This document shows positions 541-12,464 of a DNA stretch of 64,000 bases, one piece after another. Source of the DNA: Trichoplax adhaerens. Taxonomy: Eukaryota > Animalia > Placozoa. The notes below the pieces were generated by a model, which was given only the letters and a program-made list of their open reading frames with translations, was not told where the DNA came from and made no database searches. Within the stretch, counting starts at the first letter, position 1. Every line of letters starts with the position of its first letter. The stretch spans positions 794,445-858,444 of the forward strand of contig NW_002060957.1 of the NCBI RefSeq assembly GCF_000150275.1. The letters run 5' to 3'. Made by a program: the position numbers and the translations under genes.

Positions 541-1089
541 CAGTGTAATATTTTATGTAAAATTCAGATTTATCTCTTACCGAGTTAGCCAAGGACTTCG
601 TCTAGTTATCCATAAAATAGGTCACGATAGTATTTTAAAAATGGAAAAAAATTTATACAATTAACTTTTTAGTAAAAACTAAGAGTACTGCAGTTATCAA
701 AATATATAAGGGTATATCGATGCACAAAAAATTATACTATAATTTATGTAAGGTGCGCTATAAAATATATAATATATTGCACATTTCGTCTGCACTATCT
801 CTGCAAGAACTTTATTACTTCATATCTAAATTAATAAATAATCACTAAAGCATAAAGCTCACTTTTTGATACGAGCTAAGAATATTGATACCGCTACTTG
901 CAGTTATCGTAGGTAACTATGTGTTTTACGCATGCTGCATAATGAAGTCGGTAATTAAATTCACATGTTACAATATCTTGTCGTTAAGTTATTTTTTAGT
1001 AAAGTCTATCATTTGAGTCTTTAATAATTGCTGATATAGAAGAAATTCGCTATAAAAATATTAGATGTAAACTTGCATGTGATTATCTT

Positions 1090-3231
1090 AGACTTATGGA
1101 CTGAAATTGGAGTAACTCACTAGACCCATAATGTTGATATCAGGCAGTTTAAATGATATAAATGTGTTATTAAATCAACGTGCAAATTCTGCATTTAATG
1201 TTATCTTGTGATACAAATTAAGATGTTATAGTGTTTGATACTTCAAGATATTTGAGCTATCGAGATAATTTAAACAAAATTAGCCATCACAGTAAGCTAT
1301 CATGTAAGCAAAATCATATATAATTATTTGAGACTTACGCGCTGAAATCGGAGTAATCGCCGAAGCCATAATGTTGATATCGTATAGTATATATTATAGA
1401 AAATATATAATTATATCAGTTCTTAGTTCCGTATTTGAAAGTTTTTTATCTTAAAGCTAATTTGCAATACTTATTGCGATATAATAGTGAGCGATAGTTC
1501 TTGATATTGGAGGTATCAAGATAATGTAAACAAATTCAATTATCAAACTATTGTAAAGCAAGGCCATAAATGTTTGTTAAAGACTTACACGCTGAAATTG
1601 TAGTAGTTGTTAGAGCGATAACATTGATATCACGATATCATACAGTGTAAATAATAAAAAATGAATACGTTAATCAGTTTTTAATTCTGTACTTGAAATT
1701 TATCTTATCACAAAGTTGATTTGTGACACACATTACGAAATTATGGTATTTGATAGTTCATGATATTCGAAATATTGAATAACATAAACAAATTAACTAT
1801 TAAAGTATCATAAAAACAAAGTCAATATATGACTATAAAAGACTTACGCGCTGAATTCGGAGTAATCGTTAGAGCGATGATGTTGATATCATACAGTATA
1901 AATGATAGAAAATTTATAATAAACATATTGTGATATTTTATCATTTGATAGTTCGTGATAGCCGAAATATTGAGATATTATAAACAAATTTTAATATTAA
2001 ACTTTGACAACATAAAGTCACATATATAATTAAATAAATTATTAAACGATCATAAAAATTGTATATAATAAATTAAGACTTACACGCTGAAATTAGAATA
2101 TTCGTTAGAGCGATGATGTCGATATCATACATTTTAAATGACAGAAAATATACAATAAAGACGTTATGGTATTGTTTTGTTTGATAGTTCGTGATATCGA
2201 GATAATATAAATAAATTTAATTATTAAGTTATCATAAAAACAAAGTCAGACAAGATCATTTGAGATTTAATGCTAAAAACCAGAGTAATCGTTACAGCCA
2301 TAATTTTGTCAAAATATAGTGTAAGTAATACAAAAAGTATAATTAAAATTGAATACAATATAATTTTATAGTATTCGATAGATCATAATATCCTTAATAT
2401 CGTGATAGTATATGCAAATTTAACTATTAAGCTATCATACAAACAAAATCAAATTTTATCATTTAATTAAGATTTATATTCTGAAATTGGAGTAATTACT
2501 AGAGCCATAATGTTGGTATCATAAAGTATAGATGATAGAAAAGGTATAATTAGCACAGTTCTTTATTCTTAATTTAACAGTTATTACGTCACAAAGTCGA
2601 TTTGCCACACATATTGCGATATTTTAATTTTAGATAGCTCATAATATCTGATCTATCAAGTTAACTCTTACGAACAAATTTAATTATCAAAGTATCACAA
2701 TAATAAAGTCATATATACATATTTGAGACTTACGACTGAAAGCTGTAATGCAATTTGAAACCATGATGTTCGAGTTATAAAGGGGAAATAAGAAAAAAAA
2801 TATGAATTAATTTCTTAAATATTCTATATTCCATGCAATCTTGAAACATAGCTTGTTTTTATTCGCTGTATCATTTAATATTTCAAAGTCAATGATATTT
2901 GATATATACGTATAGCCAATAGACAAGAATTTTCTAGCAAAGTTCTACAATTATTAAAAACATTGGTACATGTGATTACGCTCGTCCAAACTCATTGTAA
3001 TTGGAAAGATAATTAAAATAGAGGCTGCGTTTCACATGACACGCATATTGGATAAATTCGTGTAAATTGCCATCAGACCTTAAGATTTACATTAAATATC
3101 ATCTTATTTCAGTGCTAACTTATAATATCATATAGTTATTTCAATGCATTATGCTTGATGATATTTGAAGTATCGAGATAATGTATGAAATTAATCTCTA
3201 TTACAAAAAAAGATTCTTTGTATGTGTTTAC
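1090..3231 (-). repeat. Diverged tandem array, period ~190-260 bp; each unit is an intron plus a micro-exon cassette
   Basis: The + strand anchor agacttac-NNN-ctgaaat..gagtaatcgttagagc..atgttgatatc recurs at ~1090, 1331, 1581, 1840, 2076, 2263, 2470 and 2726. More decayed in-register donors lie at ~2979 and ~3231. Unit bodies share gttcgtgatatcgagataat..tatcataaaaacaaagtca. Confidence 0.9.
1339..2086 (-). CDS. Four putative 3-nt micro-exons, each one Arg codon: 2084-2086 CGT, 1848-1850 CGC, 1589-1591 CGT, 1339-1341 CGC
   Basis: The minus strand reads ttcag|CGY|gtaagtct in all four. A CTCTAAC branch point with the A at -19 is present in three (gttagag at 1609-1615, 1868-1874, 2104-2110). Only the synonymous third base varies, and the upstream exon ends in phase 0. 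Confidence 0.6.
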
Positions 3232-3445
3232 ATGTCCGTCTTTTTATCAAAAATTGCAATCTCAGATGTTCGTTGATCTAATTTTTTCAGGAGTTGTCAT
3301 TATTATATATTTAAAATTGCAATATGACTAGATAAAGGCTAAAGCGAATAGCTGTTTGGATGATCTTAATAATATAATTAATCAAAGCATGTAGTACCGG
3401 TACCCAAAGAAACTAATCATTTTGTATAATATTTCCTTAACTTAC

Positions 3446-3625
3446 CTTCGCTTCCATAATTTTGCGAGCTTCTTCCTCATCAATAATATTCTCTTCTGCC
3501 AACTCACTTAATTTTTCCTCATCCATGAATTCTGGAGAGTATTCTTCATCAGATTTATCTTGTTCAGCATTTGCAAGAACAATGGCACAGAAGAGCGTAG
3601 CAATCAATATGATCTTGGTATTCAT
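3446..3625 (-). CDS. First coding exon of a secreted prepropeptide (signal peptide plus acidic pro-region; antimicrobial-peptide- or neuropeptide-precursor-like)
   Basis: Acceptor ttttaatag|CAATG at 3627, ATG at 3625. MNTKIILIATLFCAIVLANA (basic, then hydrophobic, then AxA signal peptide) is followed by EQDKSDEEYSPEFMDEEKLSELAEENIIDEEEARKIMEAK. The exon ends in phase 0 at a perfect donor, AAG|gtaagt (3445). Confidence 0.85.
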
Positions 3626-6722: not shown

Positions 6723-9700
6723 GATTCGATCAGACTTTGAAAACAGCAATAGGTAAACATCCCTAAACAAATGTACCAACAGGTGATCTATCAAGAAAAA
6801 ATAAAATTTTCTATACGACTAGCAACAAAGAAATCTATAATTTTTTAAGGTAAAGAAATGCTATTGATTTGCAATGTAAACACAGCTTTACATTCCTGAA
6901 TTTGATGGTAAAGAACAATTAGATTACTTTTGTGCTGATTATTCTAAGCCTGAAGGGACTGTGAAATAACTTATTATTGTGATTTTAGGCCATTAGCCAT
7001 GTTTATTTGATGTACGGTAGTGTCTTTTCTATATTTATCTTATGATATATTAAGTAGCCCATAATTATAGACTGTACGGACAGATTGTTTGCTAAAGTAC
7101 AGATGACTATATACGGTAAGGTGTTTATAAAGCTACTAATAAGGTTAGAGGTAGAAAATAGAATTGTAAATCATATATTGGGATATGCTTAGTTCATTGT
7201 ACTTTGAGAGGTAGGAATAATGTCTACGAAAATAATGTAATCATTTCTATTTTGGATTAATAAAATATAGCGGTTCTCTGTAAAATATTTTGAATAGTAA
7301 TAAGCTGAATATATGTAAAATATGATTGTAGTTGCGAAGGCTACAGAGAGTATAAAAGCAGGAGACGTTAGATTATTATCTGATTGTTCCTTCTAGAAGT
7401 CTTTCAATAGCTATATTCGGCTAGAATAGAGCTATCCGTAGCTATTCTTTGTATTAGATCCAATAAAGTTCTAATTTTCTACAACTTTGGAATTTTCGTA
7501 ATCGGACCTAATCACAAGGACCTAATTATAAGCGTTACATTGATTTTACTGATTAATACTAAAAAGAAATACAGTCATCGCCGCTCATTAACCTTACGGT
7601 ACTAAGCCCCGAAATTAGTTCAATCCTAGATTTATCTTAGTCTACTCTACATAACAATAGCCCAAGGATTTATTTTATAAGTCCATCATATCGACTGATT
7701 ACCAAATACTCAGGTATCGAAGGTTCCAACTCGTGACATATAAAACAGTGAAATAGATAGGTTACGTGGTGGCCTGGAACGAAAAGGTTTTGAGTCTAGG
7801 GAAGAATTCGATAAATTTGATACTGACTAGAGTAGATTTTTTGAAAGCAACCTATGAGACAACTATCTTAAGAAAAACATTTTAAAAGTAAATAAAGTAA
7901 ATAAAAACGTACTCAAAAAGCAATATATTATCGTATATTTGCAAAAATAAAAACCTATCGAATATGCTTATTCGATTAATAAGCGGAAAACGCTTCGCCC
8001 TAGGGTTTGCTGTTTAATTTAAGGGGTTGTGACTGTATTTCAATTGACTGTATTGAAATACCATTTTATTATAGAATACAATTTCAATAGGTGATGATTA
8101 ACTTATAACGACATTTCTTTACATCTAATTAATCTCCATAAGCTATTTGATTATTACTTACAGTTCTTAAACAGTTATGTAACAAAGATATTGTAAGTTG
8201 TAAAAATTCTTTAAACAATAACATGAGCTAAATGAATAATGTTNTGAATCGCAAATAGCATAATATCTTAAATCAACTCCTGTTTCAAATTAACTTGGCT
8301 TAAGGGCCTAGTATTATGTCTATTATTAGTAAGATACAGAAATAGTTTCAATGCGATTGCATTGTCATTACTTGACATAAACTGACGACTTATATTAAAG
8401 AAGTTTGTAATGATTAATTACGTCTAAGCACATGTTATTTCAGAAACTTGTTGATTTTGACGTTGGCCTTGCCACTCATAAATGATTCATACGTGTATTT
8501 TATTTATTGAACGAAAGGAGTAGAATTAATAAATGGTTAAAGAAGCAATATAAGGGTTGCTTTGATAGGAATCGACGGTCTTCGTTGCTTTATCCAATAA
8601 GTACAAAATTACTATATTAATTTACATTTTAAAACTAGCTCCTGTAACTGATTATTCCATTAACCTTAAATTCTGCATCGAAAAATGTATCGAATATCTA
8701 AAGGAGACATAATAAAAATATTGATGGTGCTAGATTAATGTATCATCGAATCTAAACAAATAATTTATCCATCATACTGTATTTTATTTTGGATAGCAAT
8801 TGTATTTCCTAAAACTATCTAATTATTTTATTTTTGTTACGTCTTTAATTGCCCGCTGTTAATAAGTTAACGTTAGCAATAGTTTCCCATTCTTAAGTCT
8901 TAACAAGATAATACTTCCAGTTCAATTACATTTTACACAAAGACATTGTTACAATGTAACTATTTACGGTTATGTGAATATTATGACCAACTTTAACAGA
9001 AATAGCAATTAAGAGCTCCTTTAAGAGTTTTATTTTCGTAGCTTAAAATTCAGCAAGAAAGAGTTTTAAATCTAGACATTTGCTCTTTTTTAACGAATCA
9101 AGAAAGGCCTGATCAAATGATAATTAAGAGTACGTAATTCAATCGCTCTTATTTTATAACGGCTGCACAATATCTAAATTTAAATTATGTGAGAAATCTT
9201 AACAACAAGTTAAATATTAATGTCTATGTCGTAAATATCGAATAACTTAGTAACAAATTTATAATTTAAGAAAACACTTAATTTTGAACTGGTTGTAATC
9301 TTATCGCGACTTGACGAAATACTAAAATTAGTGAATTAAATTCTTCTGGTCCTGTGATAGAGCAGTTATACGTCTAAAATAGGTAGCTGAAGCATATGAT
9401 CTAAAATGAGCTGATTGTTAAGACAACTTCAAGTATGAAATTGATCAGTATTTCAAATTTCTCTATATGATAGCTAAATATTAGATTATATCTTTACCTT
9501 ATTATACTGTTGTCAATCTTCTTAATTTTATACAAATATTTATTTAACGTTATTCATGTGTATAATTGAAAATAGAAACGCCTTTTACGTATTATGAATT
9601 ATGCCAAGGTATAGCATTAATTAAACTTTAGGAAGCTTGGAAAAGTCAACAGTGTAATACACTTACAGCGTTATAATTGGAAAATATCTGAGTATGACTT

Positions 9701-12464
9701 TTATCCAATTTAGGCATTCTGAATCTGCCTAGTAAGAATGTGCTAAGGTACGCGTATATCGATTTTAGAAAAGTTTTAAATTTATTAGATTCTGGCGTTA
9801 TCAGGTGTTCCCTTATGAACGCGATATCATAGTTGGCATGGCTTTCTTACTGATATTGTTTACATGAAGAAATATCTGATAACGTATGAACCTAAGCAAT
9901 TTTAGAACTTTTCTGAAAAAACAGTATACCTTGAAGCATGTATCGGTACTGTTGATTTTTCTTTTCTTTTTAGCAATGCTTCTCAAAACAGGTTCGCACT
10001 TACATTGAATGCAGAAAACATTTTACTTTAACTTGAATAATTTTGAAAACGTTCGAAGATCTACGTCTCTAGCTACTTCAAATCAGAAGCTATAAAATAT
10101 TGGTAATAAAACTAATGTCATAGCTTACAGACATAAAGGTCACTCACTCAATTATATATTTATGATCTGGTTATAATAAGCAGTTTTATAATAGTATTGG
10201 TCAGTTACGATTGATTGTTTACTTTTATGTTACAACAAAGCTTATTTGGATCACACTGATTTGTCTTCCAAAATTTAATAACGATAGAAATTAGAACAAT
10301 GAGCATGAACTTTGCTACGTTGAGCATGAAACCTAAGATTACGTAAGAGTAGAACCATTCGGCTTATATTGATGGAAAAGCTTTTTTATGATTAGGAAAA
10401 AAAGGTTTATTTCTAGCCAGAGAATATTCATTATTTGATACTTTATAAGATTTAAAATAATTGCCTGTGGCAATTTCTAAGCTAATAAGGCAAACAGTCT
10501 GCGCAGTAGGAATAACAGAGTTTTTCGGTAGCTTTAACGATAATGTTACGTTATGCTGAGATGTTGATTGCAGCAAGAATCTATAGCTAGTCTATGAAGC
10601 ATCTGAGAATAGAATTTCTTGAGATTATACAGACCACGATCAAGCTATCCGTAATAAATAGATTTTAAGCTAAAAGTAAAACTTAAATCTAAGTCGTTAG
10701 AAATTATAGTTTTTTTAAGCTAATGGCGAATAAATTTTATTGTTGTACCACATTTTCGAACTATCACAGAAAAAACAACCATTCTTTATAATACGATCTT
10801 ACTTCATATTTATTATGCCCAACAGAACATCATATGCTCGCTAGGGGATTGTAAACCTGTAAAGCTGCTGTCTACGAAATTAATTACAATTAAATTTTTG
10901 GTACTGTGTACTGGACTTTGAGCAATTGTCATAAACCAGCTTCGTGACAAAGATAACGTAAAACAAATCTCTAAATTATTATAGTCTCCGGGATTCAGTA
11001 TCCCTAAACTACCTCACAAGAATTTAGACGCCTTTTCTTCTACCTTAAAACAACTATATAACTCTTCTTTTATTCAACTATCTGCCGAGCTCAAATACCC
11101 TTCGGCAGCAGCTATCATGCATGAGTCATAACAGTTCATAAAACTCAGCTTATATCGGATATCTAAATTAATACAGACATTATTTATAACTTTGGACGTG
11201 TACTGAACGATTCTAGATAATTAGATTACAGTATGTCTACACACAGAATTATTTATAGTATCGTCTATAGATGAATATCTTCAGGATATTCATCACAAGC
11301 GTTACAATACATATCACTATAATTAAATAATATTAGCTACCTTATGAGAACTCTTACTACAGTAGAGCATAATTTACTGTGACTAAATAATAACTACCGT
11401 AGTTTTTACTATAAGTCATCATTATTTGTCTCCATATATATTACTGTTAAACACTAAATTTAGCCGCTTACCCTTCTGGGTGGTTCGTACTGTGACAGCA
11501 ATATTTCAGCTAATTGCAGTAGTTCCGTAATTAGATGGTATAGCAATGCTGTAGGATGAATTAAAGAACTTTTTTATGCAAAATAATTGGCTAGACCTAA
11601 TAAATTAATTCTATTAGCAGCTAAAAGCTTCATTCATTACATTATTTTAATTACAGAAAGGTGAATAATTTAGTTTTTAGCGCATATTATGGCTACTACC
11701 ATGATTTCAAATCACGTAATTACAGTAGTGAATACCGTAACTATAAAGGCTTCGTATAATTCACAGACTACTAAATATAGGGAGGGATTTGGGATTTAGT
11801 GGTCCACAGCTCAAATGCACTTCATATTTCTACGCTTAACCCATTCTACTTTACCATAGAGTTTTCATAGTCTATTACGAGTATGACGTACTTTCAAATT
11901 TCACAACTACAGTAATGATTAGCTGAAGCTTCTACGGTTACGCTGTAGATTTTTCACACGTAGCCTATTTTACATTACCTTAGCAATATGAATTAATATA
12001 GTCGGCCCTGTAAATGTTAGAACCTTCTACTTCAATCACTTTTAGTACATATTTTAATAAGACTGCCCTTATGATATATAATGTAAGAATAACTATTTAT
12101 CCGATACTGAAAACCTTACCATAAAGGTATGGTCTCTTATATTCGTTACTGTATCGAATTTTGATAATTATGCCCGAGACAGGGATTAGTACGTATTTCG
12201 GCTAGCAGAAAAAATCCTTTCACATAAAAAAATTGATTATTAAACACTACCATGCACTTGAACTCCGTATTCATCAGATGCTCGCGTTGAATATGTCATA
12301 TCCTGTACTATTCGTAAACATCATCAAATACCTTCGTATCGATTCTAACAGACGTACAATAACTAATATCAAAATCGTTATTATATTTCATCAGCGCGAG
12401 TGAATGTTAAAACGAAGAAAATTTATTTATTTGATCAAACCAAATAATTAACCTGTAATAAAGC

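Follow-up and report, generated by a model that had tools for sequence, protein, structure and literature searches.

The genome of the placozoan Trichoplax adhaerens (assembly of 105.6 Mb in 1414 contigs, 32% G+C) contains, within a stretch of 64,000 nucleotides (G000:C1400:794445-858444, analysed as a whole and hereafter called the window), a short exon for a putative signal peptide and an acidic pro-region, with an array of diverged repeat units of about 250 bp downstream on the same strand. Four of these units carry intact splice signals around a single arginine triplet, CGT or CGC (together CGY), which may represent an exon of one codon. The features of this locus are listed below in window coordinates, with slashes marking putative exon borders.

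3446-3625, minus strand: exon 1, a 60-codon open frame (MNTK...MEAK) with homologous first exons elsewhere in the genome, included in TRIADDRAFT_60413 and TrispH2_002920
3440-3445, minus strand: 5' splice site of exon 1, gtaagt, read as AAG/gtaagt in phase 0
3310-3363, minus strand: rival second exon of the H2 model, reading IIQTAIRFSLYLVILQF and then a stop, after an 82-nt intron with an AAG acceptor
976-2866, minus strand: the array, U0 to U7, eight diverged units of about 250 bp
2734-2742 (AG at 2736), minus strand: U0, decayed, reading ttcag/TC/gtaagtct (2 nt, frame-breaking) or acag/CTTTCAGTC/gtaagtct (9 nt, LSV), branch motif gone
2478-2480 (AG at 2481), minus strand: U1, decayed, reading ttcag/AAT/ataaatct with a dead donor, branch motif CTCTAGT
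2270-2272 (AG at 2273), minus strand: U2, decayed, branch motif GTAAC and acceptor tttttag kept, donor dead (ttaaat)
2084-2086, minus strand: U3, candidate 3-nt exon CGT (Arg), CTCTAAC at 2104-2110 with the branch A at 2105
1848-1850, minus strand: U4, candidate 3-nt exon CGC (Arg), CTCTAAC with the branch A at 1869
1589-1591, minus strand: U5, candidate 3-nt exon CGT (Arg), CTCTAAC with the branch A at 1610
1339-1341, minus strand: U6, candidate 3-nt exon CGC (Arg), TTCGGCG in place of CTCTAAC
1083-1100 (AG at 1101), minus strand: U7, possible last coding exon, acceptor intact and donor dead (ataagt), reading TCC ATA AGT CTA AGA TAA (SISLR and a stop)
543-1199, minus strand: U7 and about 560 nt downstream of it, 96.5% identical to C1365:16725-17380, with AATAAA at ~812-817

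Exon 1 begins with MNTKIILIATLFCAIVLANA, a sequence resembling a signal peptide, and continues as a 40-residue acidic stretch (17 D/E, 5 K/R) up to ...MEAK. An earlier reading of the window, made from the letters alone (hereafter the sequence-only reading), had proposed an exon for signal peptide and acidic pro-region, ending on MEAK in phase 0, and this is borne out by the minus strand from 3625 to 3446. The exon is included in the NCBI protein TRIADDRAFT_60413 (JGI model, Trichoplax adhaerens) and in the H2 model TrispH2_002920. Protein searches (one against 1.8 billion representatives, and one at 90% identity) returned matches only to the JGI model, to two H2 models and to one record of 60 aa, while Pfam displayed no domain above threshold and the ESM Atlas no usable match. 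A database protein of 60 aa, derived from an NCBI contig of 21,019 nt, is identical to exon 1 alone.

The two public models differ from each other in their second exons. The JGI model TRIADDRAFT_60413 attaches exon 1 to AT-rich sequence at ~2950-2810 (minus strand). In the H2 model the exon at 3310-3363 is used, and ATCATCCAAACA is the sequence that would come directly after exon 1 if this joining took place. Read-through of the exon 1 donor, on the other hand, would continue as GTAAGTTAA up to the stop at 3437. Neither of the two annotated second exons resembles the arginine-rich exons of the paralogs described below, and both public models appear to have the wrong second exon for this gene. 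The only arginine codons of the window that are positioned to come after the pro-region are the CGY triplets.

In U3 to U6 the intact core reads TTCAG/CGY/GTAAGTCT. The four ttcag/CGT or CGC/gtaagtct units on which the sequence-only reading was built lie precisely at 2086-2084, 1850-1848, 1591-1589 and 1341-1339. Its further claim of a CTCTAAC branch motif in three of them applies to U3, U4 and U5, each with the branch A located 19 nt before the triplet, and U6 is devoid of the motif. The number of four units holds for those with an intact core, but the array comprises eight units in all, four of which (U0, U1, U2 and U7) are decayed. The distance from unit to unit is 233-256 nt, corresponding to introns of about 240 nt. 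Tandem Repeats Finder did not report the array, because its units are too diverged. In U1 and U7 the donor has become ATAA(A/G)T and in U2 TTAAAT; decayed units frequently are without the branch motif as well.

Due to a conserved ATAATCAT block, read-through of the donor leads in every aligned unit to an in-frame TAA five codons on (X-V-S-L-x-stop). A unit left unspliced would therefore end the protein at once. The acceptor of U2, if used, would give CAT TAA, that is, MEAK-H-stop. The stretch at 543-1199 may represent a possible 3' untranslated region or a conserved spacer; its counterpart on contig C1365 likewise comes after an array of the 250-bp unit.

The possibility of an intron-hosted small RNA, in the manner of a snoRNA host gene, was set aside, as there was no Rfam match, conserved fold or unusual folding energy. 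At E<=1, Rfam displayed no match on the array and one chance match outside of it. RNAalifold on 12 units returned 0 pairs, and the z-score for the fold of a single unit was -0.87.

Conservation within the array is concentrated at the putative splice signals. Outside the core, the intact units U3 to U6 share 53-70% pairwise identity, with 35% of the aligned columns invariant, whereas the core is constant in 15 of its 16 columns and varies only at the third position of the codon. This agrees with the claim that the units have diverged while their splice signals were conserved, the triplet varying at the synonymous third position only. TTCAGCG and GTAAGTCT are the two longest invariant runs among the intact units, and they flank the single variable site. 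The chance of an equally conserved window of 16 columns was estimated at ~1e-4 after correction for position. The pattern YAG-NNN-GTAAGT occurs four times on both strands of the 64-kb window, always within the array; shuffled sequences lead to an expectation of 0.86, and four or more occurrences were found in 1 of 100 shuffles.

In the decayed units of the window, AG+GTAAGT displays about 7 changes in 32 positions, which is close to the rate expected without constraint, as compared to 0 in the intact units. Among 55 distinct units from all arrays, parsimony assigns 21 changes to AG+GTAAGT versus ~49 expected. Judged by these patterns, the core of the intact units is under purifying selection, in the form of two splice sites and a retained CG, since old and diverged units keep 15 of 16 columns while decayed units change at about the unconstrained rate. 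It is confirmed that the conserved array is more than a young repeat, that its intact units are old copies, and that the observation is not due to chance.

Homologs of exon 1 were searched in six frames throughout the genome with exon 1 itself, and then with a profile derived from six first exons. The first-exon family contains at least 7 strong relatives (E 1e-16 to 1e-23) and about 20 weaker ones. Two loci of this family are the following.

C1400:~455600-458530, minus strand: paralog whose first exon has signal and acidic parts, followed by 7 or more in-frame micro-exons of 15-24 nt that encode Tyr/Trp/Phe and RRR(R)
C1410:4754299-4782243: cluster of four paralogous first exons ~9 kb apart, two of which were read in detail

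The exons of the paralog at C1400:~456-458 kb read ETSDKA, AYYRRRRS, VIRRRRW, YRRRFL, YRRRW, YRRRRF and YRRRRI, each located in a duplicated exon-intron unit. The H2 model TrispH2_010970 contains ETSDKA and AYYRRRRS, one of them with an arginine run, and then reads into an intron. In the two C1410 paralogs a 30-nt exon and an exon of 84-90 nt are followed by a conserved stretch of 6 nt, GGAAAG (Gly-Lys), between splice signals; their late exons read W-RRRRR-YYI-RRRR-YYI-RRRR-YYI-RRRR-Y, or RRR spaced by YI, VFF or FY. A phase-0 donor is common to the family (AAG/gtaagt in the window, ATC/gtaagt and GTA/gtaagt in the C1410 paralogs), and the arginine codons of the paralog exons are CGT and CGC, too.

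From these sequence comparisons, exon 1 is taken to belong to a family of secreted-peptide genes, of which arginine runs on tiny in-frame exons are a hallmark as far as the genes can be read from the genome. At the level of sequence, the window displays this trait of in-frame downstream exons with arginine as four CGY units with intact signals. Paralogs and window gene thus are alike in the homologous first exon, the phase-0 donor, and CGT/CGC arginine runs on in-frame exons in tandem-duplicated exon-intron units. They are unlike in that the paralog exons measure 15-24 nt or 84-90 nt and mix arginine with Tyr, Phe, Trp or Ile. The introns of the paralogs are without visible relation to the 250-bp unit of the window array.

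The 250-bp unit itself is found at three further places.

C1400:17281-29532, plus strand: four higher-order copies, each a ~2-kb spacer and an array of the unit
C1365:8077-24239: two arrays of the unit within this interval (array stretch 14.7-20.2 kb)
C1400:783.3-782.3 kb, on the same strand as the window gene and downstream of it: one array of the unit

In addition, an isolated copy of the core, TTCAG-CGT-GTAAATCT, is located at C1411:3633028-3633043 (plus strand), outside of any array.

At C1400:17-30 kb the triplets read ACT, TAT, ACC, GGC and three times CGC (T,Y,T,G,R,R,R), or GCT, TCT, GGT and CGC (A,S,G,R), among others. Comparison of the young copies in this region shows differences at 7 of 21 triplet sites and at 93 of 1733 flank sites (p = 1e-4), i.e. 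the triplets change about six times faster. All of these triplet substitutions change the residue, and one pair also differs by a deletion of a single base. This divergence fits a coding sequence under diversifying pressure. No evident gene was found around the arrays in C1400:12-32 kb, and a tblastx search for exons of the 12-TM family in the spacers found none.

Location of arrays in a stretch of C1400:17-30 kb without an evident gene may suggest that the unit is a tandem repeat without coding function (a satellite, or a portion of a non-coding transcript), with a core that is only splice-like or is spliced without coding meaning, and with its place behind exon 1 being coincidental. Similarity between the consensuses of the arrays is fair over the entire unit and extends beyond the core, and conservation of the final ~90 nt of the intron exceeds what splicing by itself would demand, both of which would be in line with such a repeat. 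However, the core is an exact match to both splice consensuses, the branch motif is spaced from it as expected, and frame and strand agree with those of a phase-0 exon; the triplet keeps its CG while the third position varies; RNA family match and conserved fold are absent; and the paralogs of exon 1 carry arginine micro-exons downstream. We regard a non-coding repeat as most improbable. Occurrence of the same unit and core widely at loci unrelated to such genes had been named beforehand as a sign against one-codon exons, and arrays without a first exon are in fact present at the three further places; but these loci are few, and two of them adjoin or duplicate the array of the window.

Contig C1365 (45 kb), probably the second haplotype or a duplicate made in assembly, is a 92-99% copy of the window flanks and of C1400:778-786 kb, with a gap of 2.1 kb (9540-11654) where the window gene would fall. 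It also displays the counterpart of the stretch directly before the window. The number of intact units on this contig is exactly nine, and they translate as V,R,R,R,F,R,R,R,R. The next units of the window locus probably lie in C1400:786170-794444, directly before window position 1. Since the arrays of C1365 and of C1400:782-783 kb adjoin or duplicate that of the window, on the same strand and downstream, they may belong to one long gene together with it.

As a variant of the one-codon reading, exon 1 and the four arginine exons would then be the 5' part of a gene in which U7 is skipped and splicing continues through the next arrays (the one before the window and the one at C1400:783.3-782.3 kb), giving RRRR-V-RRR-F-RRRR. 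The neighbouring arrays share strand and spacer with that of the window and lack a separate first exon, the nine intact units of the C1365 copy would supply the residues, and the resulting pattern is like that of the C1410 paralogs. On the other hand, the acceptor of U7 is intact and leads to an in-frame stop, U7 and the stretch downstream of it recur behind each array like the end of a gene, and introns of 3-4 kb would be required. A gene of this extent is a tentative proposal, possible but doubtful.

The decayed half of the window array may suggest yet another explanation, namely that one-codon exons worked here for a long time and that the gene is now decaying or spliced otherwise (to the H2 exon at 3363-3310, to U2, or by read-through), so that the triplets are rarely or never included. 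Four of the eight units have decayed by now, an acceptor followed by an in-frame stop is available earlier in the array at U2, the H2 annotation picks the exon at 3363-3310, and the predicted tail past RRRR lacks the aromatic residues that are typical of the paralogs. However, the four central cores are the same at 15 of 16 positions, although the units diverge by 30-47% outside of them; hence, any loss of function would be recent. Moreover, the JGI and H2 models conflict, and neither has a second exon like the arginine-rich exons of the paralogs. We consider a relic unlikely.

Based on this dataset, we hypothesize that the CGY triplets are real exons of one codon, which would give ...MEAK-RRRR, with the long gene included as a variant. 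Taken together, the genomic evidence makes this reading probable, with a substantial measure of doubt. What the sequence-only reading had proposed, one arginine per micro-exon, has gained from selection on the core, from the family membership of exon 1 and from the arginine micro-exons of the paralogs. Frame and strand agree, as the phase-0 exon 1 lies directly upstream of the array on the same strand.

Several observations weigh against this interpretation. Three decayed units (U0-U2) precede the intact ones, and in U2 branch point and acceptor are intact, so that the frame would stop after one codon. The two public models link exon 1 to other second exons than the CGY triplets, and the choice of the H2 model is a possible one. 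A terminal exon was sought after U7 and after the last array, and none was identified. The predicted KRRRR and the five residues following it are poor in aromatics as compared to the paralogs. Strict and relaxed scans upstream of the other arrays (C1400:17-30 kb, C1365 and C1400:782-783 kb) found no signal-peptide exons. Across the unit family the donor positions G+1 and G+5 were lost about 7 times each, which is near the column average. Short gene conversion between units could mimic the triplet divergence at C1400:17-30 kb, and much of the excess of change at the triplet throughout the family may reflect a higher rate at G/C columns in general.

In the mechanism proposed for the one-codon exons, the locus would belong to a family of Trichoplax genes for small, secreted peptides rich in arginine, with tiny in-frame exons that here would have shrunk to one codon. 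Transcription would begin upstream of 3625, and the donor of exon 1 would pair with the first working unit, each intact unit of ~250 bases representing an intron and then one CGY (Arg) exon. The footprints of U2AF and U1 are such that an acceptor AG and a donor GT located 3 nt apart are probably not both occupied simultaneously. Introns would hence be removed one by one, since acceptor and donor probably cannot be bound at once, and each join would leave codon/GTAAGT as the next donor. The resulting message would encode ...MEAK-R-R-R-R and a short tail. KRRRR may represent a multibasic processing site, or a cationic peptide may begin there, similar to the situation in the paralogs. The array may have grown by unequal crossing-over of the unit of intron and codon, with one residue gained or lost per event and the frame kept. 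Beyond the anatomy of the DNA, we infer that the locus is transcribed and that its triplets enter the message, and likewise in which order splicing proceeds and what the product does.

A more far-reaching proposal, in which the cationic part is built one codon per exon by stepwise splicing, perhaps from one long gene over three arrays, and in which the number of residues is set by exon use and by unequal crossing-over, is possible though we would not consider it likely. Tuning of the arginine count by exon skipping is speculation.

Should the joins exist, a coding exon of nearly the smallest possible size would be used repeatedly in a row, and how the spliceosome copes with an acceptor and a donor 3 nt apart would become a basic question. 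Standard gene finders and read aligners would then overlook a whole class of placozoan secreted peptides. Under the more far-reaching proposal, a peptide could change in length and charge by single residues, in the course of evolution and perhaps also between cells. Poly-arginine peptides, with aromatics in the paralogs, are candidates for the antimicrobial or signalling repertoire of Trichoplax. The window provides a small example of four candidate exons tied directly to an identifiable first exon, in which the argument from selection is independent of RNA data.

Putative antimicrobial peptide (AMP) precursors of Trichoplax that resemble arminins (AMP1-4; Mayorova et al., 2025) display a layout of signal, acidic and basic parts, measure 150-250 aa and terminate with a Gly for amidation (PMC12013895). 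The comparison with arminin-like precursors, which the sequence-only reading had drawn, agrees with this layout. The paper does not name TRIADDRAFT_60413 and leaves exon structure unmentioned ('exon' occurs 0 times), and a literature search found no mention of TRIADDRAFT_60413. Compared by description, the signal and acidic parts of AMP1-4 are present in the window gene, and the basic part would be present only if the CGY exons are used. Unlike AMP1-4, the product of the window gene is predicted to measure ~65-75 aa, with no Gly in the triplets or in the U7 tail.

The window gene resembles the micro-exon genes of Schistosoma in its secreted product, in the signal peptide on the first exon, and in short exons of a multiple of three nucleotides that arise by tandem duplication. 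The exons of micro-exon genes in Schistosoma measure ~6-36 nt, and exon skipping is a hallmark of these genes. The candidate exons of the window, however, are of 3 nt, there is no kinship in sequence, and the phylum is a different one.

Splicing of single 3-nt exons that insert one residue is reported, for example, for cytohesin-1, for micro-Ex8 of Drosophila homothorax and for MAP4K5 (PMC6314551, PMC7392893, PMC8632122). These are single exons in large genes, whereas the window presents a consecutive run, each candidate being located on its own repeat unit. A literature search returned isolated 3-nt exons only, and no paper on arrays of consecutive ones.

Recursive splice sites (ratchet points) of Drosophila and vertebrates are zero-length AG/GT junctions in very long introns, which are spliced stepwise in the 5'-to-3' direction. 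The units of the window are similar in that acceptor and donor adjoin and that stepwise splicing would be needed. They differ from ratchet points in keeping 3 nt between AG and GT, and in introns of only ~240 nt.

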